The notes under the pieces were generated by a model. The model was not told the DNA's origin, did not search any database, and was given only the letters and a program-made list of their open reading frames with translations. The position numbers and the translations under genes are program-made. This document shows positions 4 to 28,587 of a stretch of 64,000 bases of DNA, piece by piece. The stretch lies in IMG/VR virus record IMGVR_UViG_3300031787_007614, positions 1-64,000 of that record; one strand, given 5' to 3'. Numbering within the stretch: position 1 is the stretch's first letter; each line of letters begins with the position of its first letter.

Positions 4-153
4 TATAGTCAAGCACCGAGAGATGCTCAATTTATGCGTCCTCCGCTAAGAGTGCAATAGCCGATAGCAGTTATATTAGGATCCGTTCCCGGCCGGTTGG
101 ACCCGAATAGCGTAAGCGTCCTTACACGATACCTTTATCGGTGCTTGACTATA
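4..153 (-). ncRNA. Unassigned structured RNA (A) closed by a 16-bp stem
   Basis: TATAGTCAAGCACCGA (4-19) is the perfect inverted repeat of 138-153. Internal hairpins (GTAAG/CTTAC, GGGTCC/GGATCC) and G-U pairs mostly favour the minus strand. No ORF; lies in the tRNA operon. Confidence 0.6.
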
Positions 154-183
154 AAAACTAAAAGTTCGGATTTGAAAATCAAA

Positions 184-325
184 TCCTCCCACTGCTAACT
201 ACTGCTTCCCAATTTATCGTCCATCGGCACCCGTGGTAGGGCTTGCGATGCTCATCGGCCCTGAGTTCTGGCTCAGGTGATCCTTGGGATAGGACTGCTG
301 GGCCTTGTCCTGCCCAGCATCAGGA
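184..325 (-). ncRNA. Unassigned structured RNA (B) with H-type pseudoknot
   Basis: Minus strand TGCTGGGC/GCCCAGCA stem whose loop AGGAC can pair with the following GTCCT; further hairpins CCTGAG/CTCAGG and CGATG/CATCG; GC-rich. Confidence 0.55.
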
Positions 326-331
326 AAATTA

Positions 332-530
332 GTTGCTCTGCATCCCCCGGCGGTAATTGTAGTGCATCATCTCTTGGGTTGCCCCGCAATTCTCACACAC
401 CTTCCACCCGCTTCCCGACAGGGACCGCTATCGTGTTGCTAACGGCCTTTCGGTAAGAAGACTACCACCCTTGAGAGTCACCTCACTTCTTATCCTGCGG
501 GTCACAGTATCCGCTAACCAAGCGGAACGT
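332..530 (-). ncRNA. Unassigned structured RNA (C), about 200 nt
   Basis: Minus-strand stems CCGCT/AGCGG, TAAGAAG/CTTCTTA enclosing TGAG/CTCA, and CGGT/ACCG; GC-rich, within the tRNA operon. Confidence 0.5.
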
Positions 531-535
531 CGGGG

Positions 536-595
536 AGAAGCCACGGTTGCAGGACCTAGTGCTCTTGCGAGGAAGTGTCCAGGCGATGTGGCTTC
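536..595 (-). ncRNA. Small bulged hairpin RNA (D)
   Basis: GAAGCCAC/GTGGCTTC outer stem, GCCTGG/CTAGGT middle stem, CTC-GCAA-GAG GNRA tetraloop. Confidence 0.45.
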
Positions 596-600
596 AAACT

Positions 601-693
601 TGAGGCATCATGTGGGATTCGAACCCACGCAAGAAAACCTTGATGATCATTCAAGGTTGAAGCAAACCACACTCCGTTACATCCTATGACGCC
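601..693 (-). ncRNA. Non-canonical tRNA-like RNA 1
   Basis: 8-bp acceptor GGCGTCAT/ATGATGCC, T-arm GTGGG-TTCGAAT-CCCAC, 8-bp hairpin with loop ATGATCA, no clear D-stem, ends TCA. Confidence 0.6.
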
Positions 694-700
694 ATAAACT

Positions 701-791
701 TGGTGGACAACAATGGGAATCTAACCCACTTCTTCCTCGTATGCTATTACGAAGTTTCATACCAGCCTCAGGTAATTGACACATCATGTCC
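701..791 (-). ncRNA. Non-canonical tRNA-like RNA 2
   Basis: GGACA.../...TGTCC acceptor ending ACCA, T-arm GTGGG-TTAGATT-CCCAT, hairpin CTTCGTA/TACGAGG, no canonical D or anticodon arm. Confidence 0.6.
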
Positions 792-798
792 ATAAACT

Positions 799-873
799 TG
801 GCGGTCCCAGGGGGTAACGATCCCCCTCCTCAGCAGTGACAGTGCTGTGTGCGTCCATGAACACCTTGAGACC
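799..873 (-). tRNA. tRNA-Asp(GTC)
   Basis: Full cloverleaf, anticodon loop CT-GTC-AC, G73 and encoded CCA; atypical T-loop ATCGTTA. Confidence 0.9.
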
Positions 874-879
874 AAATTA

Positions 880-1075
880 GGATAAGCTACTGGGTTCCAC
901 GCCAGCCCTTAATTGAGCAGTTACTCTGTCCATCTCATTTATTCAAAGTCTGTGTGCAGTGAGATTCTGCCTATCAGAGTCTGTAAGGGTAGTCTCCATC
1001 CTTACGCTTACGGTCTTCTGCCACCGGATCTCTATCGCTAATCAAACGCTACTTTAACGAAAGTAGTAACGGGAT
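880..1075 (-). ncRNA. Unassigned multi-hairpin RNA (G), about 195 nt
   Basis: Between tRNA-Glu and tRNA-Asp; stems CTACTTT/AAAGTAG, CGGT/ACCG, GTAAGG/CCTTAC, AGACTCTG/CAGAATCT, CTGG/CCAG; no ORF. Confidence 0.55.
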
Positions 1076-1076
1076 T

Positions 1077-1151
1077 TGGTAGAGCGTAGGGGAATCGAAC
1101 CCCTCTTACAGGCGTGAAAGGCTTGTGTCCTAACCGATAGACGAACGCTCC
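1077..1151 (-). tRNA. tRNA-Glu(TTC)
   Basis: Cloverleaf, anticodon loop CT-TTC-AC, T-loop TTCGATT, CCA end. Confidence 0.93.
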
Positions 1152-1157
1152 ATAGTT

Positions 1158-1392
1158 CACTATATGAAAACACATTAGGGAAGTTCTTGACACGCATCAC
1201 CAACTTGCATCAAGACCTCATTACAGGCCCAGTAGTTCCGCCGCCTTCCTGGAGTTTGGTGTAGCCTTATCCCTCACGCTCGATGGTGTCTCGCGCTACT
1301 CTTAGGCCCTCCTGCTTCATGGGTATCCGGCTCGAATCAGCCTTTGTTCACCCCTAACGGACTAGGTAACCCTAATGTGTTTACATATAGTG
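1158..1392 (-). ncRNA. Unassigned structured RNA (H) closed by a 23-bp stem
   Basis: 1158-1180 and 1370-1392 are inverted repeats with one mismatch; GC-rich interior with TCTTGA/TCAAGA and GTAGC/GCTAC stems. Confidence 0.6.
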
Positions 1393-1486
1393 CCCAGAAC
1401 TTAATCTGGGGCACTATACAAAATTAAATTTTTAACGAACTTCAAAGTAGTTTCGATCAACTGCCTTTGTTTTCTAACTAGTCTCT

Positions 1487-1515
1487 AGTATAGCATCTCC
1501 TGCTTTACTGGTCAA
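1487..1515 (-). promoter_or_regulatory. sigma70 promoter, RNA operon (proximal)
   Basis: TTGACC-17-TATACT with extended TG. Confidence 0.75.
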
Positions 1516-1584
1516 CTTGTTTTGTAAATGCCCCGCCTTGTTGCAGGGTCTTTACAAACTTCGCTGTTTTTCTAACTTGTGTCT

Positions 1585-1613
1585 AGTATAGCACCAATCC
1601 AATTATTGGTCTA
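1585..1613 (-). promoter_or_regulatory. sigma70 promoter, RNA operon (distal)
   Basis: TAGACC-17-TATACT with extended TG; downstream sequence duplicated relative to the proximal promoter. Confidence 0.7.
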
Positions 1614-1620
1614 CTGCCAT

Positions 1621-2608: not shown

Positions 2609-2638
2609 ATTATATAGCACAAACACTGAGAATGTCAA
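2609..2638 (-). promoter_or_regulatory. sigma70 promoter of porin
   Basis: TTGACA with downstream TATAAT-like box. Confidence 0.6.
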
Positions 2639-2640
2639 AG

Positions 2641-2666
2641 AAAATGGCTACTTTCGCAGCCATTTT
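2641..2666 (-). terminator. Terminator after tmRNA
   Basis: AAAATGGCT-GCGAAAGT-AGCCATTTT. Confidence 0.75.
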
Positions 2667-2826
2667 GGTGGTTTCTGTTACGAGGTATTTCCTACCCTAG
2701 ACGACCTTAAGCGGCCATCAAGAATTTTTCATCATTTGCAGATAAAAGTTTTGCTTGATTTACGGTCATCGCCTACCGTGCTGTCCACTCTGTTACTCTT
2801 TGCCCTGTCGAATCTAGGTCAGGCCC
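2666..2826 (-). ncRNA. ssrA: tmRNA, two-piece: piece with 5' acceptor strand and tag ORF ANDEKFLMAA* (2707-2739)
   Basis: Starts GGGCCTGA-CCTAGATTCGAC; tag reading frame ends in AA-stop. Confidence 0.92.
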
Positions 2827-2839
2827 ATCATAAAGAAAC

Positions 2840-2917
2840 TTAATCTACGCTTAATGTTGTTAACAACAAGCATAATATTGGAAAAACAATTAATAAAAAT
2901 TTTGCTAAATTTTCCAT
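2840..2917 (-). CDS. 25-aa hydrophobic micropeptide in tmRNA intervening segment
   Basis: MENLAKFLLIVFPILCLLLTTLSVD*; start is 1 nt after the upstream micro-ORF stop. Confidence 0.45.
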   Translation of the reverse strand: MENLAKFLLIVFPILCLLLTTLSVD

Positions 2918-2918
2918 A

Positions 2919-3029
2919 TTACCATAACTCACAGTTTTTTATTTTCTCTTCGTCCAATGTGGTATCACGTGTAAAATAAAATACACCAAACACTAACCAA
3001 AATAACAAAAATAAAACATAACCTATCAT
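2919..3029 (-). CDS. 36-aa single-TM micropeptide in tmRNA intervening segment
   Basis: MIGYVLFLLFWLVFGVFYFTRDTTLDEEKIKNCELW*; RBS AAGGAAG just upstream. Confidence 0.55.
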   Translation of the reverse strand: MIGYVLFLLFWLVFGVFYFTRDTTLDEEKIKNCELW

Positions 3030-3041
3030 TAAACTTCCTTA

Positions 3042-3108
3042 TGGTGGACCTGGGGGGATTCGCACCCCCGTCCAGAACACTTTTCTCTCGGCTTCATACA
3101 GCAATAAC
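3042..3108 (-). ncRNA. ssrA: tmRNA, two-piece: piece with T-arm and ACCA end (transcribed first)
   Basis: GGAC-GGGGG-TGCGAAT-CCCCC-CAGGTCC-ACCA; pairs with GGGCCTG giving the G3-U70 Ala identity. Confidence 0.92.
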
Positions 3109-3112
3109 TCGC

Positions 3113-3141
3113 AGTATATATTTATTCTTTGGGCTTGTCAA
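3113..3141 (-). promoter_or_regulatory. sigma70 promoter of tmRNA
   Basis: TTGACA-17-TATACT. Confidence 0.8.
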
Positions 3142-3283
3142 CTGCTTTGGAGATGATGTCATACACTTGTGCGTATGCATCAGTAATTTTGTCTAGTTGT
3201 TGTTCCGACACCAAGTCTGTGTCCTCCAGACTGACCAAGTCTCGGGCTAGATTTTCTTGTAGTTTTTTTATGGGATTGAGCAC
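3122..3283 (-). CDS. Hypothetical protein, 53 aa (GTG start)
   Basis: Manual translation VLNPIKKLQENLARDL...; ATAAATA motif upstream. Confidence 0.5.
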   Translation of the reverse strand: MLNPIKKLQENLARDLVSLEDTDLVSEQQLDKITDAYAQVYDIISKAVDKPKE

Positions 3284-3291
3284 ATACCTAT

Positions 3292-3825
3292 TTATTCATC
3301 CCCGCTATCTACTGGGATCCAGCCCAACTTAAAAAAGTCTTCCTGGATTTCTTCTGTGACATGTCCTTCGGGTACATATCTTTTAACACCGTCAGCATCA
3401 CCATTGCCCAGTCCATCGCCTATGCCCGAACAGTACCAATCAATATAGTCACCTTGTTCACGCATGTCGGCAACAATACCCCCGGCATAGCGCCACGAAC
3501 AACTGTAGGTCTCTCCCTTTAGCAAAGGCCATACTTCGTTGCGTTGCCAGTCTTGATTGCACAAGGCTGCGTAGATGTTTTGAGCGTAGGTATCGCTGGC
3601 CTTGGCTTTGTCGCAAACCCACTTGGTGCTACGCAAATCATATTCAAGATTGTTTTCTCGCCACCGTTCGTCGGCTTCGCGTTGAGCCTGATGTTCGTTG
3701 ATCATGCGTTCAAGATCTAAAGCTCGTTGAACATCTTCGTCAGTGGCAGGATCTCCTCCTTCCGCAATGACATCTTCAATTCTGCATTGACTGTGAAAGG
3801 TTCCGCGAGTAGGACTTTTGTTCAT
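3292..3825 (-). CDS. Hypothetical phage protein
   Basis: Start moved to MNKSP to avoid overlap with tRNA-Leu. Confidence 0.75.
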   Translation of the reverse strand: MNKSPTRGTFHSQCRIEDVIAEGGDPATDEDVQRALDLERMINEHQAQREADERWRENNLEYDLRSTKWVCDKAKASDTYAQNIYAALCNQDWQRNEVWPLLKGETYSCSWRYAGGIVADMREQGDYIDWYCSGIGDGLGNGDADGVKRYVPEGHVTEEIQEDFFKLGWIPVDSGDE

Positions 3826-3831
3826 AATGTT

Positions 3832-3917
3832 TGGTACCAGAGACGGGACTCGAACCCGTATGCCCTTGCAAGCGGCAGATTTTAAGTCTGCTGTGTATAC
3901 CATTCCACCACTCTGGC
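3832..3917 (-). tRNA. tRNA-Leu(TAA)
   Basis: Long variable arm, anticodon loop CT-TAA-AA, ACCA. Confidence 0.95.
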
Positions 3918-3935
3918 TTTGCGTTATTTAATACA

Positions 3936-4010
3936 TGGTCCGGCGTAGAGGAATCGAACCTCTATAATGACTTTAGAAGAATCATGTCCTATCCGTTGAA
4001 CGAACGCCAG
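3936..4010 (-). tRNA. tRNA-Arg(TCT)
   Basis: Cloverleaf, anticodon loop CT-TCT-AA, CCA. Confidence 0.93.
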
Positions 4011-4015
4011 ATGTT

Positions 4016-4090
4016 TGGTGGGCCAACTTGGAATTGAACCAAGACTCGACCGATTATGAGTCGGTTGCTTTACCATTAAGCTATTGGCCC
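4016..4090 (-). tRNA. tRNA-CAT (probably Ile2, otherwise elongator Met)
   Basis: Cloverleaf, loop CT-CAT-AA; G1-C72 paired so not initiator. Confidence 0.9.
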
Positions 4091-4548: not shown

Positions 4549-5313
4549 TCAACGGTCTTTGTCAGTTCTTACCAATTGAATTAAGCGGTATCCAGGATCA
4601 AATTCCCACCATTTTTTGCCAAACTGTGGATCTGCGGCAGCGGCGTGATGATTGTTGTGCCAGCCCTCTCCACCAGTCAAATATCCTACCAGCAGGTTAT
4701 TTGAACTTTGATCACGTGTGTCAAAATTTCTATATCCTGATGGACTGTGAGTGAGAGAGTTGGTCAGTGAACTGGCATGTTGCAACAATAGTGACGGAAC
4801 CAAATAAGCATACACTACTGCATAAGGATCTATCATGTAAACTGCCACCCCGACCAAGATAGTGTACAACCAATGATTGTAGTACATGTGCATGTGAAAT
4901 TTGGATTTCACAATCTCTGGAGCATAACTTAATTTTGGAGTAGCAGGTGTGAGTCTAAATTGCACGGCTAGATAACCGTATACCGCAGGTGAGTGCGGAT
5001 CATCTTTTGTGTCAGAGTGTCTATGATGCGCTCGATGTATTGCTACCCAATACAACATTGGTAAAGTTGTGCCAGGAATAGCAATCAATGTTCCTAGATA
5101 TTCAAACCATTTTGGTGCTTGAAAAGAACGATGGGTGATCAGCCGATGAACTGTTACAGTTCCGACTACCATCTTGATATAGTAGACCAACAGACATATT
5201 GCCCACTGCCATGCTTCACTGTTGAAGATAAAGTAGACCAGGATCACATGTAGACAGGCACTGTATGCAATCATTTCGTTGTGCGAAGGCACAAACCAGT
5301 TTTTCTTTTTCAT
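4549..5313 (-). CDS. Membrane fatty-acid (delta-9-type) desaturase
   Basis: Three His boxes HRLITH, HRAHH, WHNNHH; TM segments; WWEFD. Confidence 0.92.
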   Translation of the reverse strand: MKKKNWFVPSHNEMIAYSACLHVILVYFIFNSEAWQWAICLLVYYIKMVVGTVTVHRLITHRSFQAPKWFEYLGTLIAIPGTTLPMLYWVAIHRAHHRHSDTKDDPHSPAVYGYLAVQFRLTPATPKLSYAPEIVKSKFHMHMYYNHWLYTILVGVAVYMIDPYAVVYAYLVPSLLLQHASSLTNSLTHSPSGYRNFDTRDQSSNNLLVGYLTGGEGWHNNHHAAAADPQFGKKWWEFDPGYRLIQLVRTDKDR

Positions 5314-6573: not shown

Positions 6574-6762
6574 TTAAAAAAGTACCACAAGGGCAAGTAG
6601 ACTACCAAAAGTAAGTATAGCACAAAATGCACTGTAAGTCAAGAGTTTTACCAAACTCCACGATTCTTTTCCGGACATGTTCCGTAGGTACTGAATGCCG
6701 AAAAAGAACATGCCAAACACAACAACAAAAGCCAATAGGATTCTAATCATCACACTCTCCAA
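6574..6762 (-). CDS. Small two-TM membrane protein
   Basis: Two hydrophobic segments. Confidence 0.65.
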   Translation of the reverse strand: MESVMIRILLAFVVVFGMFFFGIQYLRNMSGKESWSLVKLLTYSAFCAILTFGSLLALVVLF

Positions 6763-7223
6763 ATTTCTTCAAAACCTTCCGACAAGTCTGGCTCTTCCCA
6801 GTCCCGAATCATGCGAGCAATCACCTCAGATGGGATTGTTTTGCCCGGACGGCCGGCCAATCGTCTAGCCAATTCTTCAGGCTCGGGCGTTCGAAATACC
6901 ACAGCAATGGCCGAGTATTCCGGCAACATGCGAAACTTTTTGGCCCGGCTTGCCCGTGTGGTGCTGGTCTGATCCCAGATGATGTCGTTGTTGTTAGCCT
7001 GTGCAGTCAACGCATGGTTGGTCATCAGGCGAACAGCAATAGGCATGTATTCTTCAAACACTTCTGAATAGGTCTTGCCTTGGCTCCGGGCATAATCTTC
7101 CACCCAGGGGTCTGTGCTGACCACACTCAAGCCCAAGGCCCAGACCTGGTCTTTGATCCAGGTGCTTTTGCCTGATCCTGGCACTCCTACCAACATGTAC
7201 AATTTAGGCACTTTCAACTCCAA
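6750..7223 (-). CDS. P-loop kinase (AAA_33/PNK kinase-like)
   Basis: GVPGSGKST, IIWDQT. Confidence 0.85.
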   Translation of the reverse strand: MELKVPKLYMLVGVPGSGKSTWIKDQVWALGLSVVSTDPWVEDYARSQGKTYSEVFEEYMPIAVRLMTNHALTAQANNNDIIWDQTSTTRASRAKKFRMLPEYSAIAVVFRTPEPEELARRLAGRPGKTIPSEVIARMIRDWEEPDLSEGFEEIWRV

Positions 7224-9893: not shown

Positions 9894-10218
9894 CGTTTTG
9901 CTTCACGCGAACGTCCGTGTTCAGCGCAGGTGCATACTTTTGTATTAACTCGCGCTCCAACTTATGTGCGGCATCTTTGCCACGCACAATGTCCACGATA
10001 GCCACGTTCATTGCTTCAGTACCGTTTGCGCGAATTGCTTCGTACAAGTTCCAGCCTTTGTCTTCTGTGCGGCTACGGTAGATGTGCTTGTTCACACGGC
10101 TACGGAGCGACATGTTGATTGTGCGCTGGGTTTTTGCGGTAATACCAATGTAGTACTCAAATCCAATTTGGATCATGTACACTATGTGGCTGCGATCAGT
10201 ACGTTTCTTTCTCATCAT
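9889..10218 (-). CDS. Small GIY-YIG-like nuclease domain protein
   Basis: VYMI....YYIGIT, R...H, E..LI, LN motifs; probably leaderless. Confidence 0.7.
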
Positions 10219-10254
10219 GTGTGTATTATAGCATTTTGGGCATTTTTGGTCAAC
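10218..10254 (-). promoter_or_regulatory. Early sigma70 promoter (repeat 3)
   Basis: TTGACC-17-TATAAT, TG extension, followed by ACACACAT. Confidence 0.85.
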
Positions 10255-10263
10255 CGAAATGCC

Positions 10264-10320
10264 TGTTGCAAAAATACAACAAAAGTACTACTTTTTTTAG
10301 CCCTAAAAGTAGTACTTTTT
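10264..10320. repeat. Nested palindromes at the strand switch
   Basis: TGTTGCAAAAATACAACA, then AAAAGTACTACTTTT and AAAAGTAGTACTTTT. Confidence 0.7.
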
Positions 10321-10372
10321 TCAGCAAAAATTGAATATTTGGTCAACCAAAGTGTGGGCTATAAGTAACAGC

Positions 10373-11446
10373 ATGGACACTGATCTTTACCACGACATTT
10401 ACACTAGCGAAATTTTTGACACCAGCCAATGCATATGGCACGAAAATAATACCATGAATTTCTTTCACAGTTTGTTGATCAAACTGGGATATGAGCCTGT
10501 GCAAGATGGACACAAAACATGGCGCCGTGGAGACCGTACTGTGGTGCTGTGTCTGGTAGACGACTACATCTCTACCACATACGACTATGACACACCAGTG
10601 GCATATCGATTTGATCGCAATACCACAGTGATCACAGACAACTATGTTACCAGTCCAACCTTGTACAAGGTGTTTCAACTGCCATCCAGTTTCTTTGGCA
10701 TCTATCATTATGAACCCAAGCTGACCAATTTCAATCCCACACGCAGATTTAATTTTTCAGTCAATCGCATTGATTCCAAACGCATGTTGACCATGCTGGA
10801 AATTGCGTTGCGTTGTGAAAAGTATCCAGATGCTGAAACGTTGGACTTTATCAATTTCAACTGCTGGAGTTGGGAAGGTGACAATTCCACAGCTGAAGGA
10901 TGCAATCAAAATTTCAGAGATGCCTACGAAAAACTAGAGCCACAATACAAAGCAGTGTATGGTGACACTTTTGAACGCATTGCTCAAACCATGCCATTTA
11001 AAAATCATGACATGTCAGTTGAGCAGGCACACCTCAGTGCTTATGTGAACATGGTAATTGAAACCTACTCCAGTGACAGTTCAATTGCTCTCAGCGAGAA
11101 GATATTCCGTGCATTGGTCACTCCGGCACCCTGGCAAGTGTATGCTGGCCGCCATGCAGTGGCCTATCTGGAAAGTCTAGGATTTGACACACTCAAAGAC
11201 ATTGTCAATCACAGTTACGATGTCATGATGGAAAACAAAACTGCTGCCTATGGTGACAAACTGGTTGAATACATCTTTGCTGGCGCAGATACATTTACCA
11301 AACTCAGTGCTATGGATCGCACAGAACTGCGACATCGTTGCCTTACTGCCAGCAGACAAAATCAAAAGGTGCTCAAAGACATGAGTGCTCGTTGGCCTGC
11401 AGAGTTTGCCGCTTGGTTGCCGGCTGTTATAGACCATATCAAATAA
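10373..11446 (+). CDS. Putative glycosyltransferase, GT10-like paralog 1
   Basis: IET....LSEK..RAL...P.......L..LGF...D..NHSYD motif; TATAAGTA at 10360-10367. Confidence 0.6.
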   Translation: MDTDLYHDIYTSEIFDTSQCIWHENNTMNFFHSLLIKLGYEPVQDGHKTWRRGDRTVVLCLVDDYISTTYDYDTPVAYRFDRNTTVITDNYVTSPTLYKVFQLPSSFFGIYHYEPKLTNFNPTRRFNFSVNRIDSKRMLTMLEIALRCEKYPDAETLDFINFNCWSWEGDNSTAEGCNQNFRDAYEKLEPQYKAVYGDTFERIAQTMPFKNHDMSVEQAHLSAYVNMVIETYSSDSSIALSEKIFRALVTPAPWQVYAGRHAVAYLESLGFDTLKDIVNHSYDVMMENKTAAYGDKLVEYIFAGADTFTKLSAMDRTELRHRCLTASRQNQKVLKDMSARWPAEFAAWLPAVIDHIK

Positions 11447-11447
11447 C

Positions 11448-12989
11448 ATGTGTGGTGTTCTATACGTAAAAAGCACCACTGATATACCGCTAGAAAAGCA
11501 CAACCAAGCTCTAGAAATTTTAAAAGATCGCGGTCCAGATTTTACCTGTTACCAACATCATGGTCGTGTGTTCTGTGCGCAAACAGTTCTGCACATCACT
11601 GGCAACACACAATTTTACAATCGACAGTCAGATGATTTTTTTGCATTCAATGGCGAAATCTACAACTATCGCTGGTTTGGTTCCTACAGCAACGACACTG
11701 AGCTGATGTATCGTGCTGTAAAAGACGCACCAGTAAAAAAACTCAAATACTTTGAAGGACCGTGGGCGTGGGTGTATGCTCAAGGCGACCAAGTGATATA
11801 TGCCACTGATCCACAAGGCGAAAGATGCCTGTACAGATATCAAGACAACAACATACTGATTGTGAGTTCTGAGGTGGCAGCTATTTTGGTATACATCCGA
11901 CCAAAATTACAAGACATTGATTACACAACCAAACACTATCCAATTTGGCAAAACACGCCTTGGCAAGGAATTGAACGATGTGTGCCAGGTGTGATGTATG
12001 ATCAGTCGGGCAACACCACAGTGATTGACAGTATCTTTTCATGGGCCAAACCCAGTAGTATTCAAACATTGGACCAGGCCTGGGAAGAATATCAACCCTT
12101 GTGGGAACGGGTAATCACTGACATGCGGCCAGAAACATCTTATGCCTGCACATTCAGTGGTGGGCTTGATTCTGGCGTGGTTGCAAAAAGTCTTCCACAA
12201 AGTCAGCACTATTATACCACCAACATGCTGGGCAAAGACCCAGTGAGTGAACAATCTCAACGTATGTTGGAAGGCAGTCAACGAGACAAAATCATCAACA
12301 TTGGTGTTACAGAACAGCAATGGGCCGATGCATTTGAGCAAGTGTGTCGTCGCACACTGATGCCAGTTCAAAGCTACAGTTTTGTTGGCCAGTGGATAAT
12401 TGCTCAACACTGCAAAGAACGTGTGTTGTTTACTGGTGTAGGCGCTGATGAACTGTTTGGTGGCTATGGCGTTTACTCACAGCTTGAATACACCACACAA
12501 ACAAGTGCAAGTCCTTACAGTTCATTTGGCAATGACACTCACGCTCAACAACTGTGGCAACAATGTTTGCATGCACATCAAGGTCAAGCAGAGCCAGCCA
12601 CTCTGTTGATGGATTATATCACTCAAATTTGTGCAATAGACATGCGTGGCATTGACGTTTGTACCATGGCACATGGCATTGAACCACGCTCGCCATTTGT
12701 GCATCCTAAGATCATTCGGTTTGCACTTGGCCTTCCCATGCACCTGAGGCGCGGCAAACCTTTGATTCGTCGACAGTTTTTGGCCTCCTGGCCTGAAGAA
12801 ATGATACTTCCCAAAAAAGGATTCACTGGACATTGCAATGATTCATTGCCTTGGATGAAATTCACTGTGCCAGATCAGGCTCGGGCACCACAGTGGAAGC
12901 AAATTGTCAAAACTGGATTTAGATATTATGCCAATCAATATCTTGATCAAACCACTCAGGACTTATCCGCACATGCGGATGTTGCTTGA
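11448..12989 (+). CDS. asnB: Asparagine synthetase-like glutamine amidotransferase
   Basis: MCG N-terminus, RGPD, NGEIYN, SGGLDS, G.GADELFGGY, E.RSPF. Confidence 0.9.
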   Translation: MCGVLYVKSTTDIPLEKHNQALEILKDRGPDFTCYQHHGRVFCAQTVLHITGNTQFYNRQSDDFFAFNGEIYNYRWFGSYSNDTELMYRAVKDAPVKKLKYFEGPWAWVYAQGDQVIYATDPQGERCLYRYQDNNILIVSSEVAAILVYIRPKLQDIDYTTKHYPIWQNTPWQGIERCVPGVMYDQSGNTTVIDSIFSWAKPSSIQTLDQAWEEYQPLWERVITDMRPETSYACTFSGGLDSGVVAKSLPQSQHYYTTNMLGKDPVSEQSQRMLEGSQRDKIINIGVTEQQWADAFEQVCRRTLMPVQSYSFVGQWIIAQHCKERVLFTGVGADELFGGYGVYSQLEYTTQTSASPYSSFGNDTHAQQLWQQCLHAHQGQAEPATLLMDYITQICAIDMRGIDVCTMAHGIEPRSPFVHPKIIRFALGLPMHLRRGKPLIRRQFLASWPEEMILPKKGFTGHCNDSLPWMKFTVPDQARAPQWKQIVKTGFRYYANQYLDQTTQDLSAHADVA

Positions 12990-21240: not shown

Positions 21241-23223
21241 TTAGGCTGCTAGTTTTGCCCTGGCGCCAGCATCTCCGCGTTTGGCAACGTCTACCTGCGT
21301 GTCAGCGTTCAAGCATTCAACTGTGGCTTTTCCAAAATTTCTACGTCTAGCAAAATAAAATAGTTCTAAGAAACGTGGAAAGCTCATAGTTTTATCTTCT
21401 GGAAACTCCAGTTGATATTCTCTTGGCGCATGTACAAGTTTGTGATCAAAGCTGAGATATTCCCAGATGTTGTAGTCTAATTCTAAAACCTCAGGATAAG
21501 TGTTCATAGCATCGTAAGCCACATGGTATCTGCGTTGGAATCGCATGATGTTCTCCAACAACACAGGCGGTAAATCATAACGACTCATGAACTTTTCTAA
21601 CATGTCAAAGATATTGTGATTTTGTTTTTCCACATGCATGTTCAACACAGTTCTGTGTATGAGGTTCCATCCGTGAATTTCAATGCCAATCTTGGGATGA
21701 TTGATTCGGCCATTGGTCATCCAACTGCGATAGTACTCGCGAACTTCTTCTTGTTCGCGGTGGATCCATTCATGACCTTGCACGTATTCAAACAGGTCTG
21801 CATAAAACTCGCTGTAGGGCACACCCTGATACTTGAACACCAATCGACTCAACAGTGTGCTGATGCCATTGATGTGGAAGGTATTGATAAACCATGAAAA
21901 AATATGTGCTTCCATCATGACATCAAACGGCATGTCTTTGGTGCCAGTGATAATGTCAATGGCTTCTTCAATGTGTTCGTTGGAGTATGATCCAGAAAAA
22001 TAGTCTGTTACACTTTGATTGGTAATCTTAAACAACTTCTTCTGCAACAGGTTCATTTCGGCATTTTCCAACAACTGAGCCTGGAACACCGTGAGACCAG
22101 TATGATTGCCCATTTCAAACAAAGTCCAAAAGTTTTTCTTCCAAGACTCAAGACTTTCACCAGGTAGGCCCAAGATAAGTTCAGTGTAGGTTGGAATGTT
22201 ACGTTGCTCACACAGCTCAAATACTTCGTTGAGCTTGTTCATTTCCATGTTTTTGCGACGAATGTTTTCCAATACATCCAAGTCAAGACTTTGCACACTC
22301 AGCGTTAGACCTTGATTGAAGCCTCGGGCATCCAGCAATTTTTTAACAATGTCCACAACTTCTTTCTTTTGATTCTTGGCCCAGGCCACAGAGAAAGTTC
22401 TCGGAGAACCATACTTTTCTTGACATTCAATAATCTTGTCTGCAATCAAACTGTCACGTTCGGCAAACATGCCAAAGTTAGCGTCAGTAATTGATATGAA
22501 ATCAAAGTTGTGCTTAGCCATCCATTCCAACTCATGGTACACACGTTCTAAACCAAACTTCTTGACCTTGTTGTATGTCAAGCTACCCCAGTCACAAAAC
22601 GTACAAGCAAATGGGCAACCACGAGAAGTTTCTAGTGTGCCTTGCCACATGATGTCAGGATTTGCAGCCATTAGGTCATCAAATACACCTGCCAGATACG
22701 GGCTAGGAATATCTTCAAGAGTTTCAATGCGCTTGGCATCACCTGTGCTTATAGCTTCGCCGTCTCGATTGATCAGCAAGCCAGGTATTGACTCCCAGTC
22801 TTTGCTGTCATATGCCAGCATGAGATTTCTAAATGTGATTTCACCTTCGTAGCAAATCACAATGTCCATGAATGGTTCTTTGCGAAACAGATCTTTGTCT
22901 GTGATTGCAGGTTCGGGACCGCCAAATATGGTCAACACGCCAGGATTGATCTCCTTGAGCCTGCGAGCCAATGCATAGTTGAAATTGTGATTCCACACAT
23001 AAGTGCTAAAAGTCACAACATCATTTTCAGCCAGTCGTTGTGCAATTGGCTCTATGTTGTCCCGGCGCCACACCCATTCAGTCACTTGCCATGCATCACG
23101 TATGCTGGGTTCCGCAACTGCATAACTCCAAATCACACCTGCTGAGTATGGCAGGTAGTAGGCATTGAGTTCTTTAGGACCTTGTTGGAAGTTTGGTTGT
23201 ACCCAGGCAATTTTTCTTTTCAT
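21241..23223 (-). CDS. B12-binding radical SAM enzyme
   Basis: STYVWN/GGP cobalamin domain, ETSRGCPFACTFC, DANFG, ILGLPGE. Confidence 0.92.
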   Translation of the reverse strand: MKRKIAWVQPNFQQGPKELNAYYLPYSAGVIWSYAVAEPSIRDAWQVTEWVWRRDNIEPIAQRLAENDVVTFSTYVWNHNFNYALARRLKEINPGVLTIFGGPEPAITDKDLFRKEPFMDIVICYEGEITFRNLMLAYDSKDWESIPGLLINRDGEAISTGDAKRIETLEDIPSPYLAGVFDDLMAANPDIMWQGTLETSRGCPFACTFCDWGSLTYNKVKKFGLERVYHELEWMAKHNFDFISITDANFGMFAERDSLIADKIIECQEKYGSPRTFSVAWAKNQKKEVVDIVKKLLDARGFNQGLTLSVQSLDLDVLENIRRKNMEMNKLNEVFELCEQRNIPTYTELILGLPGESLESWKKNFWTLFEMGNHTGLTVFQAQLLENAEMNLLQKKLFKITNQSVTDYFSGSYSNEHIEEAIDIITGTKDMPFDVMMEAHIFSWFINTFHINGISTLLSRLVFKYQGVPYSEFYADLFEYVQGHEWIHREQEEVREYYRSWMTNGRINHPKIGIEIHGWNLIHRTVLNMHVEKQNHNIFDMLEKFMSRYDLPPVLLENIMRFQRRYHVAYDAMNTYPEVLELDYNIWEYLSFDHKLVHAPREYQLEFPEDKTMSFPRFLELFYFARRRNFGKATVECLNADTQVDVAKRGDAGARAKLAA

Positions 23224-24112: not shown

Positions 24113-24733
24113 TTATGCTTGATTGTCTGCAGCCAGCTTTTTCTGCAAGTGATTCAACAAGAAACCATACGCAGGCAGAATAACCAACAGACTCACAATG
24201 ATCTTACTGATTGAATTGTTGGTTGCAACAATGTGCCAGTTAGCAGCCATGAACTCATTTGCGCCACCAGCAAAGGCAGTAAAGAAGAACACATAGGTAT
24301 CAAAGAATGTGCTCACAATTGAACTCAATGCAGGAGCAATCCACCAAGTGGCGTACTTTTCACGAATGTATTGGAACACGTACACATCAAGCAAGTTGCT
24401 CACAAAGTATGCAACACCCGAGCCAAGACCAATGCGGAAAGCAACTGAGTCAGGAGCACCGCCCAGTTTGACCACTGCCATTGACACAATGATAGCAGGG
24501 ATGAATGCCAATGCAATCACCGCACGACCAGTTTGTTTGCCTAACATTCGCACAGTCAAGTCGGTCAACACAACCACTAGTGGGAATGTGAATGCGGCTG
24601 CTGCCAATGGTGCACCAAACACTGAGAATTTGAATTGCACAATGTAGTTGCTGATAGCAATGATAATGATATGTGCCAGCATGAGCTTGTAGGCCAATGC
24701 ACGGTCAACGCCACTTAAGATTCGATCTAACAT
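24113..24733 (-). CDS. yhhQ: preQ0/preQ1 transporter (VUT family)
   Basis: SN..VQ, FTFP....TDLTVR, RI..GS..AY, DT..FF. Confidence 0.9.
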   Translation of the reverse strand: MLDRILSGVDRALAYKLMLAHIIIIAISNYIVQFKFSVFGAPLAAAAFTFPLVVVLTDLTVRMLGKQTGRAVIALAFIPAIIVSMAVVKLGGAPDSVAFRIGLGSGVAYFVSNLLDVYVFQYIREKYATWWIAPALSSIVSTFFDTYVFFFTAFAGGANEFMAANWHIVATNNSISKIIVSLLVILPAYGFLLNHLQKKLAADNQA

Positions 24734-27491: not shown

Positions 27492-27898
27492 ACGCAAACT
27501 TCCTCTTTGAGATATCGTTTGAGTTCTTTGTCATTGGGTTCTACAGTATAGTTCTTCTTGAAAAAAATTTCATAACTATCACTGCCGTATTTGCCAATGC
27601 CGTACAAATCGGTAGCATCATCACCATTCCAAGTCATGTAGTCTTGACTCATTTTTTTCAATCTGGTGTATCTTACATTAGCCATACCTAATGGTGCAAT
27701 AATGCTTTTTACAAAATCTTCATCGGCTGCGATCAATGCTTCCGGCGTTGGGAACCAGTATAAAAATTCTGGCAAGGTTGTTTTTACAGATTTGCGGCCT
27801 GTTTGATTCAACATGATCACTCCAACCATGTGTTCCCATGAGTTAGAGATTTGTTGTTGAACCATCAGATCATCTCGTAATGCATGAAAAAATATCAT
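27488..27898 (-). CDS. HhH DNA glycosylase (MBD4/endonuclease III-like)
   Basis: W...V..I.LNQT, PLG....R, LYGIGKYG.DSY.IF. Confidence 0.85.
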   Translation of the reverse strand: MIFFHALRDDLMVQQQISNSWEHMVGVIMLNQTGRKSVKTTLPEFLYWFPTPEALIAADEDFVKSIIAPLGMANVRYTRLKKMSQDYMTWNGDDATDLYGIGKYGSDSYEIFFKKNYTVEPNDKELKRYLKEEVCV

Positions 27899-28587
27899 CG
27901 TGGTGCAAAGTCCTGTTGTAGTTTGATGTTGTCAAAGAATTCTTTTTTTACACTTTGGTCTGATTTAAACGCACCGTGTAAAACTGTTGTTTGGGTGAGA
28001 CTAGAGTGAGCCATGATACCGCGATTCTCACAACAACCATGGGTAGCTTGTATATAAACTGCAACATCCTTGGACCCGGTCGCGAATTCAATTTCGCGAG
28101 CAATATCCATACATAGCTCTTCTTGGAGAGTGCCTCGACGGGCACACCATTGCGCAATCCTGGTATACTTGGATAGACCAATAAGTTTGGGGCCAGCAAT
28201 GATTCCAATATAAGCCACACCCGTAACAGGCTGGTGATGATGCGAACACATGCTCTTAAGCTCTGAACGCACCACAAGCATACCTTCGTATGCTCCGTCC
28301 GTATCGTTTGGGAAAGCCGTAGCATTAGGGCTCGTCTCATAGCGACCAGCCATAATTTCATTGAAGTACATTTTTGCAAGGCGTTGCGCCGTGCCTTGTG
28401 AGTTAGGATCATTTTCCCTGTCAATTAGTAGTGTATCGAGAACTTGTTCAAATGCTTGAGTGGCCTCCATAATCAAATGTTCACGATCTGACTCAGCAAC
28501 ATAATCACTGATGTTGTCACCAGCCCAGAATCTCTTGCCGTCTGCCTTCATGCGTTCGCGAAGGACTTGTGATAGATTTTTTTCCAA
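27895..28587 (-). CDS. folE: GTP cyclohydrolase I
   Basis: SMCSHH, GLSK..R, LQE, H.C...RG; TTG start. Confidence 0.95.
   Translation of the reverse strand: MEKNLSQVLRERMKADGKRFWAGDNISDYVAESDREHLIMEATQAFEQVLDTLLIDRENDPNSQGTAQRLAKMYFNEIMAGRYETSPNATAFPNDTDGAYEGMLVVRSELKSMCSHHHQPVTGVAYIGIIAGPKLIGLSKYTRIAQWCARRGTLQEELCMDIAREIEFATGSKDVAVYIQATHGCCENRGIMAHSSLTQTTVLHGAFKSDQSVKKEFFDNIKLQQDFAPR

Follow-up and report, generated by a model that had tools for sequence, protein, structure and literature searches.

A giant freshwater phage was found to carry a 1.6-kb RNA gene cluster that encodes two ordinary tRNAs and about eight other folded RNAs. The latter match no catalogued RNA family, yet most of them recur in tens to over a hundred other uncultivated phages, and they look like undescribed RNA classes of unknown function. 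The cluster lies at positions 4-1615 of the window, the 64,000-nt stretch of IMG/VR record IMGVR_UViG_3300031787_007614 (positions 1 to 64,000) that was analysed here.

Results

Promoters, tRNAs and boundaries of the RNA gene cluster

To investigate whether this region is a non-coding RNA operon, as a sequence-only reading had claimed from tandem promoters, the lack of credible ORFs, two true tRNAs and 7-8 foldable units with AT-rich spacers, we examined its strand, signals and coding potential. Everything described was present, but the RNA strand is the minus strand, and G-U pairs in the conserved helices fit only this strand. A consensus scan showed two tandem sigma-70-like promoters, both with a TG extension: P1, TAGACC-17-TATACT (1613-1585), and P2, TTGACC-17-TATACT (1515-1487), the latter with 10 of 12 consensus matches. 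The two are near-duplicates of each other (26 nt, 92% identical), although the scan found 11 sites where 6.6 were expected by chance. A hairpin (UUUGUAAAGACCCUGC...GCGGGGCAUUUACAAA) was read between them at 1553-1513 and was not examined further. The promoters precede about 1.5 kb with no ORF over 72 aa, which was the longest ORF in 1-1660 on either strand.

ARAGORN and Rfam agreed on exactly two tRNAs, both with CCA encoded: tRNA-Glu (UUC) at 1077-1151 (53.8 bits) and tRNA-Asp (GUC) at 799-873 (36.2 bits). The remainder divides into eight non-tRNA units, which we named A/B, X, T2, T3, H, Y, Z and W. The AT-rich spacers are real: AGUUUAU follows each CCA end at 792-798 and 694-700, AGUUUG lies at 595-600, and AAUUU-type junctions lie at 874-878 and 325-329. 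At 153-187, after Z, a terminator-like hairpin (GGAUUUGA-UUU-UCAAAUCC) is followed by a U-rich tail. It had an MFE z-score of -2.2 and was not flagged by the terminator scan, which requires at least 3 G-C pairs, and a promoter-like site, TTCAAA-17-TATAGT at 176-148, overlaps it.

None of the units matches a known Rfam family

To determine whether the units belong to known families, which had been named in advance as an outcome that would refute the reading, Rfam 15 was searched at the gathering score and at E<=10 on 64 kb, 4.4 kb and 1.46 kb. Nothing but tRNA and tmRNA was found, apart from noise-level snoRNA and miRNA hits in 1-1460, and no unit hit a family even at E<=10 with lax filters, except that T3 scored 20 bits against the tRNA model, below its gathering score of 29. 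Thus no match was obtained to GOLLD, ROOL, RNase P, group I intron, T-box, ribozymes, Y RNA, 6S, SRP or the rest, and the same held for two homologous loci (L012 and L021). A blastn search of GenBank phages returned only Bordetella phage PHB04, and only for Z.

Single-sequence folding energy did not settle whether the units are more than chance, and the case rests on homologues and covariation. The z-scores were -6.2 for the A hairpin, -4.7 for W, -3.8 for H and -3.3 for B, but only -1.8 to +0.4 for Z, Y and X, similar to the two real tRNAs. X and Y fold no better than shuffled sequence, so their case rests wholly on covariation.

Homologues and compensatory changes support the predicted structures

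We next collected homologues with exact-motif scans of IMG/VR and nhmmer searches, and examined whether base pairing is kept through compensatory changes, the lack of which had also been set out as grounds for rejection. Abundant compensatory changes were found. For X, Y, Z, W and H, the paired cells were compared with slid controls, and 0 of 500 shuffles reached the observed covariation score for any of the five, which is strong support. Related sequences can inflate the shuffle control, although the slid controls argue against that. B, T2 and T3 were examined without such controls.

Unit A (1341-1445) contains a conserved GUUC(U/G)UUAAAA box plus a leader hairpin (1383-1416), and was found by nhmmer in 76 loci; the hairpin covaries. 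Its 3' arm is shared with the closing duplex of B, so the two pairings exclude each other. Unit B (1158-1392) has an interior of about 190 nt closed by a 22-23-bp A/U-rich duplex (1392-1370 with 1180-1158), seen as a 23-nt inverted repeat. It was found in 78 loci, with 13 of 44 pairs compensatory and the closing duplex conserved, but the interior of the window's copy has diverged from most family members and rests on few or close sequences.

Unit X (878-1076) is a pseudoknotted RNA of about 195 nt with long invariant stretches (for example GAUAGAGAUCCGGUGGCAG). The 19-nt motif occurs in 113 IMG/VR contigs, and nhmmer gave 130 hits. On 56 sequences, 96.5% of cells were paired against 32-43% when slid, and 15 pairs were compensatory; this includes the pseudoknot helix AUCUC/GAGAU. 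The X core CCGGUGGCAG was invariant even in loci fetched independently of it.

Unit H (537-595) is an RNA of about 60 nt with a closing stem, conserved internal loops and an apical hairpin, and its motif occurs in 88 IMG/VR contigs. On 33 sequences, 98.2% of cells were paired against 30-43% slid, and 10 of 17 pairs were compensatory. Unit Y (326-533) is about 205 nt here and up to about 290 nt in relatives, with nested long-range helices, a variable insertion site and long invariant single-stranded segments. It gave 96 nhmmer hits, and on 24 sequences 98.0% of cells were paired against 39-56% slid, with 21 of 39 pairs compensatory. A possible loop-helix contact in Y, GACCC/GGGUG, showed one compensatory case, one wobble case and four correlated but non-Watson-Crick cases, which leaves it unsettled. 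Unit W (4-152) is cloverleaf-shaped, with a 16-bp closing stem (152-137 with 19-4) enclosing three hairpins. It gave 55 nhmmer hits, and on 16 sequences 96.6% of cells were paired against 34-42% slid, with 24 of 35 pairs compensatory.

Unit Z (185-324) is an RNA of about 140 nt whose covarying hairpins carry conserved loops (AGGNNAAGG, mostly CUAGAA). It was found in 28 IMG/VR contigs, in phage PHB04 at roughly 47.13-47.29 kb of MF663786 and in 73 metagenome contigs, with 99.5% of cells paired against 20-47% slid and 15 of 36 pairs compensatory. All 6 hits among 185,579 bacterial and archaeal genomes were chance matches in coding regions, and Z as a host-derived gene or attP site was rejected. 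A 3' hairpin of Z carries a self-complementary hexamer (UAGUUA at 197-202) in a loop of roughly 8 nt on a 2-bp stem. Across 59 distinct sequences the hexamer takes six variants, all self-complementary, and central G-U pairs are tolerated. Positions 2 and 5 read A-U 32 times, U-A 17 and C-G 10, with a mutual information of 1.43 bits against 0.47 for the next best partner, although they are only 2 nt apart. Such covariation implies pairing between molecules, probably a kissing dimer, although dimerisation has not been demonstrated. Short-range palindromic covariation was also looked for in X, Y, W, H and B, and none was found.

T2 and T3 are tRNA-like but lack a canonical anticodon loop

To determine whether T2 and T3 are canonical tRNAs, ARAGORN was run at its default, intron (-i) and relaxed -ps settings. 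It called neither, and only implausible chimeras spanning two units appeared at -ps90 and -ps80. Unit T2 (701-791) has four hairpins (class II-like), a 5-bp acceptor stem, a 6-bp T stem with the T-loop UUAGAUU, and an ACCA end, without an Rfam tRNA hit at E<=10. Its anticodon-position loop is UGAGGCU or UGAUGCU, with G where U33 should be, on a 4-bp rather than a 5-bp stem. The T2 motif occurs in 10 IMG/VR contigs; on 8 sequences, 8 of 26 pairs were compensatory and the 3' 32 nt were invariant.

Unit T3 (601-693) has a covarying acceptor stem of 7-8 bp, a canonical T arm (GUGGG-UUCGAAU-CCCAC) and a variable hairpin in place of a decoding arm, whose loop varies in length (6-7 nt) and sequence among homologues. 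The 3' tail is UCA in the window's copy and NCCA in the other 3 of 4 sequences. T3 was found in 5 IMG/VR contigs, and on 4 sequences 6 of 27 pairs were compensatory. Its profile weakly hits the 3' half of T4 tRNA-Leu. These results indicated that both units keep an acceptor stem, a T arm and a CCA-type end but not a canonical anticodon loop, although both rest on few or close sequences.

B, X, H and Y usually abut tRNAs in large phage tRNA arrays

We then examined the position of the units across 216 loci holding 2767 tRNAs. The median gap from X to the upstream tRNA was 2 nt and to the downstream tRNA 8 nt. For H the gaps were 7 and 10 nt, for Y 3 nt upstream, and for B 7 nt downstream. In contrast, W and Z were not tightly flanked by tRNAs in most loci, and Z mostly sits among small ORFs outside arrays, so one processing model may not fit all units. 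The operon is not dedicated in evolutionary terms, contrary to the sequence-only reading, but a compacted version of a widespread phage tRNA array in which tRNAs normally far outnumber these units.

In the window, a permuted two-piece tmRNA (2616-3155) and three tRNAs lie upstream. A GOLLD RNA (204 bits, gathering score 150) lies downstream in the same phage, about 1.5 kb beyond the window's left edge (10090-10554 of locus L037), followed by a further run of tRNAs; no GOLLD hit was found inside the window region. A B-family DNA polymerase and PHROG hits, together with identical sequence in IMG/VR contigs of 215-364 kb, support the phage identity. Relatives reached through the neighbouring porin gene (loci L042 and L043, 87-88% amino-acid identity) showed no match to the operon in the sequence examined downstream of that gene, and gave no covariation.

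Discussion

In the present study, the observation of an RNA operon with few tRNAs and many unassigned structured RNAs was confirmed, apart from the strand, and its interpretation as a set of RNAs of mostly unknown function was supported, with the anti-defence decoy and translation-modulator ideas remaining guesses. We suggest, with a probability of roughly 0.6, that this is the compacted RNA-gene island of a jumbo phage that probably infects a freshwater Gram-negative bacterium. At least six units (A/B, X, H, Y, Z, W) belong to families shared with tens to over a hundred other uncultivated phages and absent from Rfam, while T2 and T3 are tRNA-derived. Our analysis demonstrated the units themselves, their conservation, their covarying secondary structures and the close abutment of B, X, H and Y to tRNAs, and the island fits the description of phage structured ncRNAs encoded beside tRNA genes on the same strand with no ORF, a descriptive kind rather than a homology family.

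The rest of the model is inference from sequence. In this view, host RNA polymerase would start at the two tandem promoters and make a polycistronic precursor that ends at the hairpin after Z or after W. The most likely reading is that stable RNAs are cut out of it by tRNA-processing enzymes: RNase P would cut at the 5' ends of the tRNAs and tRNA-like units, endo- and exonucleases would trim at the CCA ends, and RNase III may cut the long closing duplexes of B and W, freeing each unit as happens for the two stable RNAs in the T4 tRNA cluster. No transcript data exist, and the promoters, terminator, processing sites and RNA stability all come from sequence alone. Discrete processed transcripts, a single transcription unit and any function were not shown. 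The freed RNAs would act in trans during infection and, given their company (tRNAs, a phage tmRNA, GOLLD), the target is most probably translation or tRNA metabolism, although nothing but its neighbours ties any unit to translation. Z would pair with a second Z molecule through its hexamer.

Other explanations were considered, and each seems less likely. Anti-defence decoys that soak up or resist tRNA-targeting nucleases or other RNA-sensing defence proteins are possible but doubtful. T2 and T3 have altered anticodon-position loops, the units travel with tRNA arrays, and phage tRNAs can replace or evade tRNAs cleaved by host anticodon nucleases. However, a decoy for an anticodon nuclease would be expected to keep the anticodon loop, X, Y, W, H and Z do not look like tRNAs, nothing in the sequence ties any unit to a defence system, and no known anti-defence gene was recognised nearby in Pfam and PHROG scans. 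Equally tentative is the idea that X, Y or both are ribozymes or tRNA-binding RNAs that help mature or regulate the array's own tRNAs. Both are about 200 nt with multi-helix folds, carry long invariant single-stranded segments, a hallmark of catalytic or ligand-binding RNAs, and sit 0-10 nt from tRNAs, but they resemble no RNase P, group I intron, T-box or small ribozyme in Rfam at E<=10, and no cleavage site or substrate could be inferred. Comparisons by hand were all dropped because the motifs did not line up or were not conserved in homologues, and because Rfam found nothing; these were hammerhead (Z has CCGAUGAG...GAC where CUGAUGA...GAA is needed), RNase P conserved regions, group I intron P/Q/R/S elements, T-box (a shared GAUUAGCGA string), the SRP GGAAGCA motif, the 16S 3' end (GGAUCACC), CsrA GGA sites and tRNA-Sec (an 8/5 reading of T3). 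Y or X as a tRNA carrying a group I intron was rejected because the termini do not form an acceptor stem.

A decaying tRNA array of pseudogenes or spacer debris is very unlikely. T2 and T3 are clearly tRNA-derived and non-canonical, the window's T3 ends in UCA and the interior of its B has diverged, but debris does not keep 96-99% base pairing through compensatory changes across dozens of diverged phages, nor 19-32-nt invariant blocks, and this phage kept the units while losing most neighbouring tRNAs found in related arrays. Cis-regulatory leaders or small protein-coding genes are just as improbable. Z lies between small ORFs in many phages and ORFs of 30-72 aa can be drawn across the region, but no ORF lies downstream on the RNA strand within the operon, the next gene converges on it, the units abut tRNAs, and the substitutions are paired-column covariation including G-U pairs, not codon-like. 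A template array for a reverse transcriptase of the UG27 or retron type was the least likely. A phage-encoded array of structured ncRNA units of about 150 nt that templates cDNA was recently described (bioRxiv 10.64898/2026.09.22.753630), and the overall look of tandem units is similar. However, no reverse transcriptase domain (PF00078) or accessory ORF was found in the roughly 50 window ORFs scanned or the flanking ORF outside it, the rest of the 286-kb genome not being scanned, the UG27 motif AUCN7UANAG is absent from 1-1615, and the units show no mutual similarity or shared fold.

Among known systems, stable RNAs C and D (species 1 and 2) of the T4 tRNA gene cluster are also non-tRNA RNAs of unknown function that directly abut tRNAs on the same strand, and rnaC has a tRNA-like 3' T arm, as T2 and T3 do. 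nhmmer in both directions found no similarity to any unit at E<=1 to 10, and no structural model of these RNAs was compared; T4 has two such RNAs against eight tRNAs, while here eight units stand against two tRNAs. GOLLD (RF02032) and ROOL are phage and prophage RNAs with ornate covarying structure and unknown function, found near tRNA islands (PMC5737381; bioRxiv 10.1101/2024.12.08.627333). They form homo-oligomers, and the Z hexamer suggests self-association too, but they are single RNAs of roughly 500-800 nt or more, whereas the eight units here are 60-235 nt and match neither model. Kissing-loop dimerisation elements, such as HIV-1 DIS and the phi29 pRNA loop-loop pairing, likewise have a short self-complementary loop sequence whose complementarity is kept through covariation, without homology to Z; this comparison draws on established knowledge and was not tested here. 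The tRNA-like domain of tmRNA and viral tRNA-like structures resemble T2 and T3 in their acceptor stem, T arm and CCA-type end without a decoding anticodon arm. If T3 is read with a 7-bp acceptor stem, it has G-U at pair 3:70 in 3 of 4 sequences, which is the alanine identity element used by tmRNA; aminoacylation was not assayed, and T3 and T2 have no mRNA-like part and no match to a tmRNA model. Non-tRNA RNAs in phage tRNA clusters are already known, and the catalogue of viral structured RNAs by Fremin et al. 2023 (PMC10690425), whose supplement was not compared, may already list some of these units anonymously.

A bolder reading, which is compatible with the evidence but unlikely, is that the island is an RNA-only toolkit of several undescribed functional RNA classes. 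X and/or Y would be new ribozymes or tRNA-recognising RNAs, Z would be an obligate homodimer or higher oligomer in the manner of ROOL, GOLLD and OLE, and T3 would be an alanine-accepting tRNA mimic. Together with the phage tmRNA and GOLLD, they would reprogram host translation or RNA turnover.

Large structured RNAs with pseudoknots and invariant unpaired nucleotides have repeatedly turned out to be ribozymes, ligand sensors or self-assembling particles, and this one locus points to at least six such families, which are abundant in lake phage communities. Z is present in a cultured phage, PHB04, so that its presence, ends and predicted dimerisation are accessible at the bench. The families could also be added to Rfam, which would improve annotation of regions currently left blank or mis-called as small hypothetical proteins. 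The embedding of the families in tRNA arrays suggests that phage tRNA islands are general launch pads for stable RNAs rather than simple codon-supply cassettes.

Genomic organization of the RNA operon

To define the organization of the RNA operon, the window was examined with ARAGORN, Rfam, a promoter and terminator scan and an ORF search. The RNA genes at 1-1615 read on the minus strand, and ARAGORN and Rfam agreed on tRNA-Glu(UUC) at 1077-1151 and tRNA-Asp(GUC) at 799-873. Two sigma-70-type promoters face left, TAGACC-17-TATACT at 1613-1585 and TTGACC-17-TATACT at 1515-1487, both of which are TG-extended and are near-duplicates of each other. No ORF longer than 72 aa exists in 1-1660 on either strand. 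A bidirectional terminator at 1622-1650 closes the upstream gene, which lies directly upstream of the RNA operon at 1670-2560 on the minus strand and encodes a Gram-negative porin (Pfam Porin_4, E 2.8e-25). Relatives with 87-88% identity (loci L042 and L043) showed no match to the operon in the sequence examined downstream of this gene.

Further upstream on the same strand lie a two-piece (permuted) tmRNA at about 2616-3155 and tRNAs Leu, Arg and Met at 3832-4090. The tmRNA is phage-encoded and of the betaproteobacterial type (Rfam tmRNA_permuted 115 bits, beta_tmRNA 111.5 bits), which hints at a betaproteobacterial host; it carries the tag peptide ANDEKFLMAA, and has about 194 nt of AT-rich insert separating its two pieces. 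Strong promoter-like sites lie at 3141-3113 and 2638-2609. A 203-aa ORF at 3292-3903 on the minus strand overlaps tRNA-Leu (3832-3917) by about 70 nt and had no Pfam or PHROG hit; its real start, if it is a gene at all, is probably further downstream.

The genome is a phage, as it has a B-family DNA polymerase and PHROG hits, and the sequence is identical to IMG/VR contigs of 215, 286 and 364 kb. In the 286-kb contig the cluster continues beyond the left edge of the window, where a convergent ketoacyl-synthase gene comes first, followed by a GOLLD RNA and a further run of tRNAs. The GOLLD RNA (RF02032, 204 bits, gathering score 150) lies about 1.5 kb beyond the edge at 10090-10554 of L037, a locus of the same phage, with a tRNA embedded at 10153-10223, and the tRNAs that follow include a weak tRNA-Sec-like hit at 11308-11396 (29.8 bits, below the gathering score). 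Four independent assemblies of this phage break inside or at the edge of the RNA operon, with two contigs (L038 and L040) starting at window position 1 and two (L039 and L041) ending near window position 1240, and sequence shared with co-occurring phages may tangle the assembly graph there.

Auxiliary metabolic genes flank the RNA island, namely a fatty-acid desaturase (window 4549-5313, minus strand), the beta-ketoacyl synthase (L037 8562-9533, just outside the window and convergent on the last RNA unit, W) and an asparagine synthase (window 11448-12989, plus strand). GTP cyclohydrolase I (27895-28587), a Vut_1/YhhQ-type transporter (24113-24733) and a B12-binding radical SAM enzyme (21241-23223), all on the minus strand, together suggest 7-deazaguanine (queuosine-type) metabolism, which could modify DNA or tRNA. 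An AAA_33-type kinase domain protein of 157 aa (E 4e-22) is encoded at 6750-7223 on the minus strand, and since polynucleotide-kinase-like enzymes belong to this fold, a role in RNA repair is conceivable.

Composition of the operon

Read 5' to 3' on the minus strand, the promoters are followed by unit A, which is a conserved box and a leader hairpin, and then by unit B, which is about 190 nt closed by a 22-23-bp duplex. Next come tRNA-Glu, unit X of about 195 nt, tRNA-Asp, and the tRNA-like units T2 and T3 of about 90 nt each. These are followed by H of about 60 nt, Y of about 205 nt, Z of about 140 nt, a weak terminator-like hairpin, and finally W, a cloverleaf of about 150 nt closed by a 16-bp stem. 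The short AT-rich spacers (TAAACT, AAATT) described in the sequence-only reading are real: AGUUUAU follows each of the CCA ends of tRNA-Asp and T2, AGUUUG follows T3, and AAUUU-type junctions close X and Y.

The units are conserved in uncultivated phages and supported by covariation

To investigate whether the units are more than chance, we firstly compared their folding energies with those of dinucleotide shuffles. The A hairpin, W, H and B were much more stable than the shuffles, with z-scores from -6.2 to -3.3, while Z, Y and X were not, with z-scores from -1.8 to +0.4. Folding energy alone is not decisive; the two genuine tRNAs scored similarly to the latter group, and the evidence comes from relatives.

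We next searched for relatives of the units. BLAST against GenBank phages found only one hit, which was Z in Bordetella phage PHB04, in an otherwise unannotated 2.7-kb gap (MF663786, about 44.7-47.8 kb) carrying only one 114-nt hypothetical CDS in the annotation. This stretch actually holds three tRNAs, a permuted tmRNA (tag ANDDYIRAAA), about 800 nt of unassigned GC-rich sequence and the Z RNA. Exact-motif scans of IMG/VR found much more, with the X motif in 113 viral contigs, H in 88, Z in 28, T2 in 10 and T3 in 5, and a metagenome scan found Z in 73 contigs. Profile searches over the 216 loci fetched gave 130 hits for X, 96 for Y, 86 for H, 78 for B, 76 for A, 55 for W, 25 for Z, 7 for T2 and 3 for T3.

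Absence of covariation among homologues together with absence of discrete transcripts had been named in advance as an outcome that would count against the units, and covariation was counted on alignments with controls in which the 3' partner was slid or the alignment was shuffled. The results showed strong covariation. In X, 96.5% of cells were paired, compared with 32-43% when slid, and 15 of 45 pairs were compensatory; the X structure includes a pseudoknot helix. The corresponding values were 98.0%, 39-56% and 21 of 39 for Y, 96.6%, 34-42% and 24 of 35 for W, 99.5%, 20-47% and 15 of 36 for Z, and 98.2%, 30-43% and 10 of 17 for H. In each of these five units, 0 of 500 shuffles reached the observed covariation score. 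B, T2 and T3 are supported more thinly, with 13 of 44 compensatory pairs on 10 sequences, 8 of 26 on 8 sequences and 6 of 27 on 4 sequences, respectively. Furthermore, invariant G-U pairs in several helices fit only the minus strand.

Comparison with known RNA families

To determine whether the units belong to known families, which had likewise been set out beforehand as a way in which the proposal could fail, they were searched against the 4227 models of Rfam 15. No unit matched any of these models, even at E<=10 with lax filters, and the nearest was T3, at 20 bits against the tRNA model, below the gathering score of 29. The two stable RNAs of T4 share no sequence with any unit. A recently described phage array of RT-templating ncRNAs (UG27) was also considered, and it was rejected because no RT was found in about 50 scanned ORFs, its motif is absent, and the units here are unlike one another. 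Z is not host-derived, as all 6 pattern matches in 185,579 bacterial and archaeal genomes were chance hits in coding regions.

Genomic setting of the families

To examine where these families occur, we analyzed the 216 loci, which hold 2767 tRNAs. B, X, H, Y and W co-occur inside large phage tRNA arrays. X typically sits as Tyr-1 nt-X-5 nt-Asp, with a median gap of 2 nt to the upstream tRNA and 8 nt to the downstream one, while H has gaps of 7 and 10 nt, Y has 3 nt upstream, and B has 7 nt downstream. A/B usually opens a block after a gap of 150-800 nt, which fits a promoter plus leader. Z is different, in that it rarely co-occurs with the others and mostly lies between small ORFs. The operon of the window is therefore a compacted array, which kept the non-tRNA units and lost most of the tRNAs, and this argues that the units are selected for their own sake.

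A group I intron (RF00028, 57.5 bits) lies at 6439-6638 of L066, a related phage tRNA array, probably interrupting a tRNA that ARAGORN misses, and many related arrays have a gap of similar size at the same place (355-389 nt, Asp-to-Met or Asp-to-Asn). Recurrent gaps of fixed size between tRNAs, such as Ser-200 nt-Y in related arrays, for example L127, L143 and L066, and Cys-114 nt-Glu, Glu-127 nt-Lys and Trp-511 nt-His in many loci, are not explained by any of the families defined here and may hold further RNA families or small ORFs.

T2 and T3 are tRNA-like RNAs

Both T2 and T3 keep an acceptor stem, a T arm and a CCA-type end. T2 has four hairpins, like a class II tRNA, but its anticodon-position loop has G at position 33 on a 4-bp stem, and its T-loop is UUAGAUU. 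In T3 the hairpin at the decoding position varies in loop length and sequence, and the T3 profile weakly matched the 3' half of T4 tRNA-Leu. If the acceptor stem of T3 is read as 7 bp, pair 3:70 is G-U in three of four sequences, which is a lead towards alanine acceptance and nothing more. The T3 of the window ends in UCA (601-603), where three homologues have CCA after the discriminator base.

A self-complementary hexamer in Z

Near its 3' end, Z has a small hairpin whose loop holds a hexamer. Across 59 distinct sequences there are six variants, UAGUUA, UUGUAA, UUGCAA, UCGCGA, UCGUGA and UAGCUA, and all six are self-complementary if G-U pairs are allowed, although the commonest variants are palindromic only at the RNA level. 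Positions 2 and 5 covary perfectly, being A-U 32 times, U-A 17 times and C-G 10 times, with mutual information of 1.43 bits, while the next best partner column gave 0.47. Two bases that close together cannot pair within one hairpin, and the simplest reading is pairing between two Z molecules. No other family showed such a signal.

Interpretation

The observation made in the sequence-only reading, that unassigned structured RNAs outnumber tRNAs in a non-coding RNA operon, is real. Its interpretation as a set of processed RNAs of mostly unknown function also stands, although it has not been shown that discrete processed transcripts exist. What our analysis demonstrates directly is the units, their families, their structures, and the abutment of B, X, H and Y to tRNAs, whereas the mechanism is inferred: transcription would start from the tandem promoters, and the precursor would then be dissected by tRNA-processing enzymes and perhaps by RNase III at the long duplexes of B and W. 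Roles as anti-defence decoys, or as ribozymes or tRNA-binding RNAs, are still possible, although each is considered unlikely, while pseudogene debris, RT templates and coding or cis-regulatory readings are disfavoured.

The RNAs are new families among the structured RNAs of phage tRNA islands, alongside T4 RNA C/D, GOLLD and ROOL, although they may already be listed anonymously in a large catalogue of viral structured RNAs (PMC10690425), with which they were not compared here. In the inferred mechanism, the freed RNAs would act in trans in the phage's takeover of translation or RNA metabolism.
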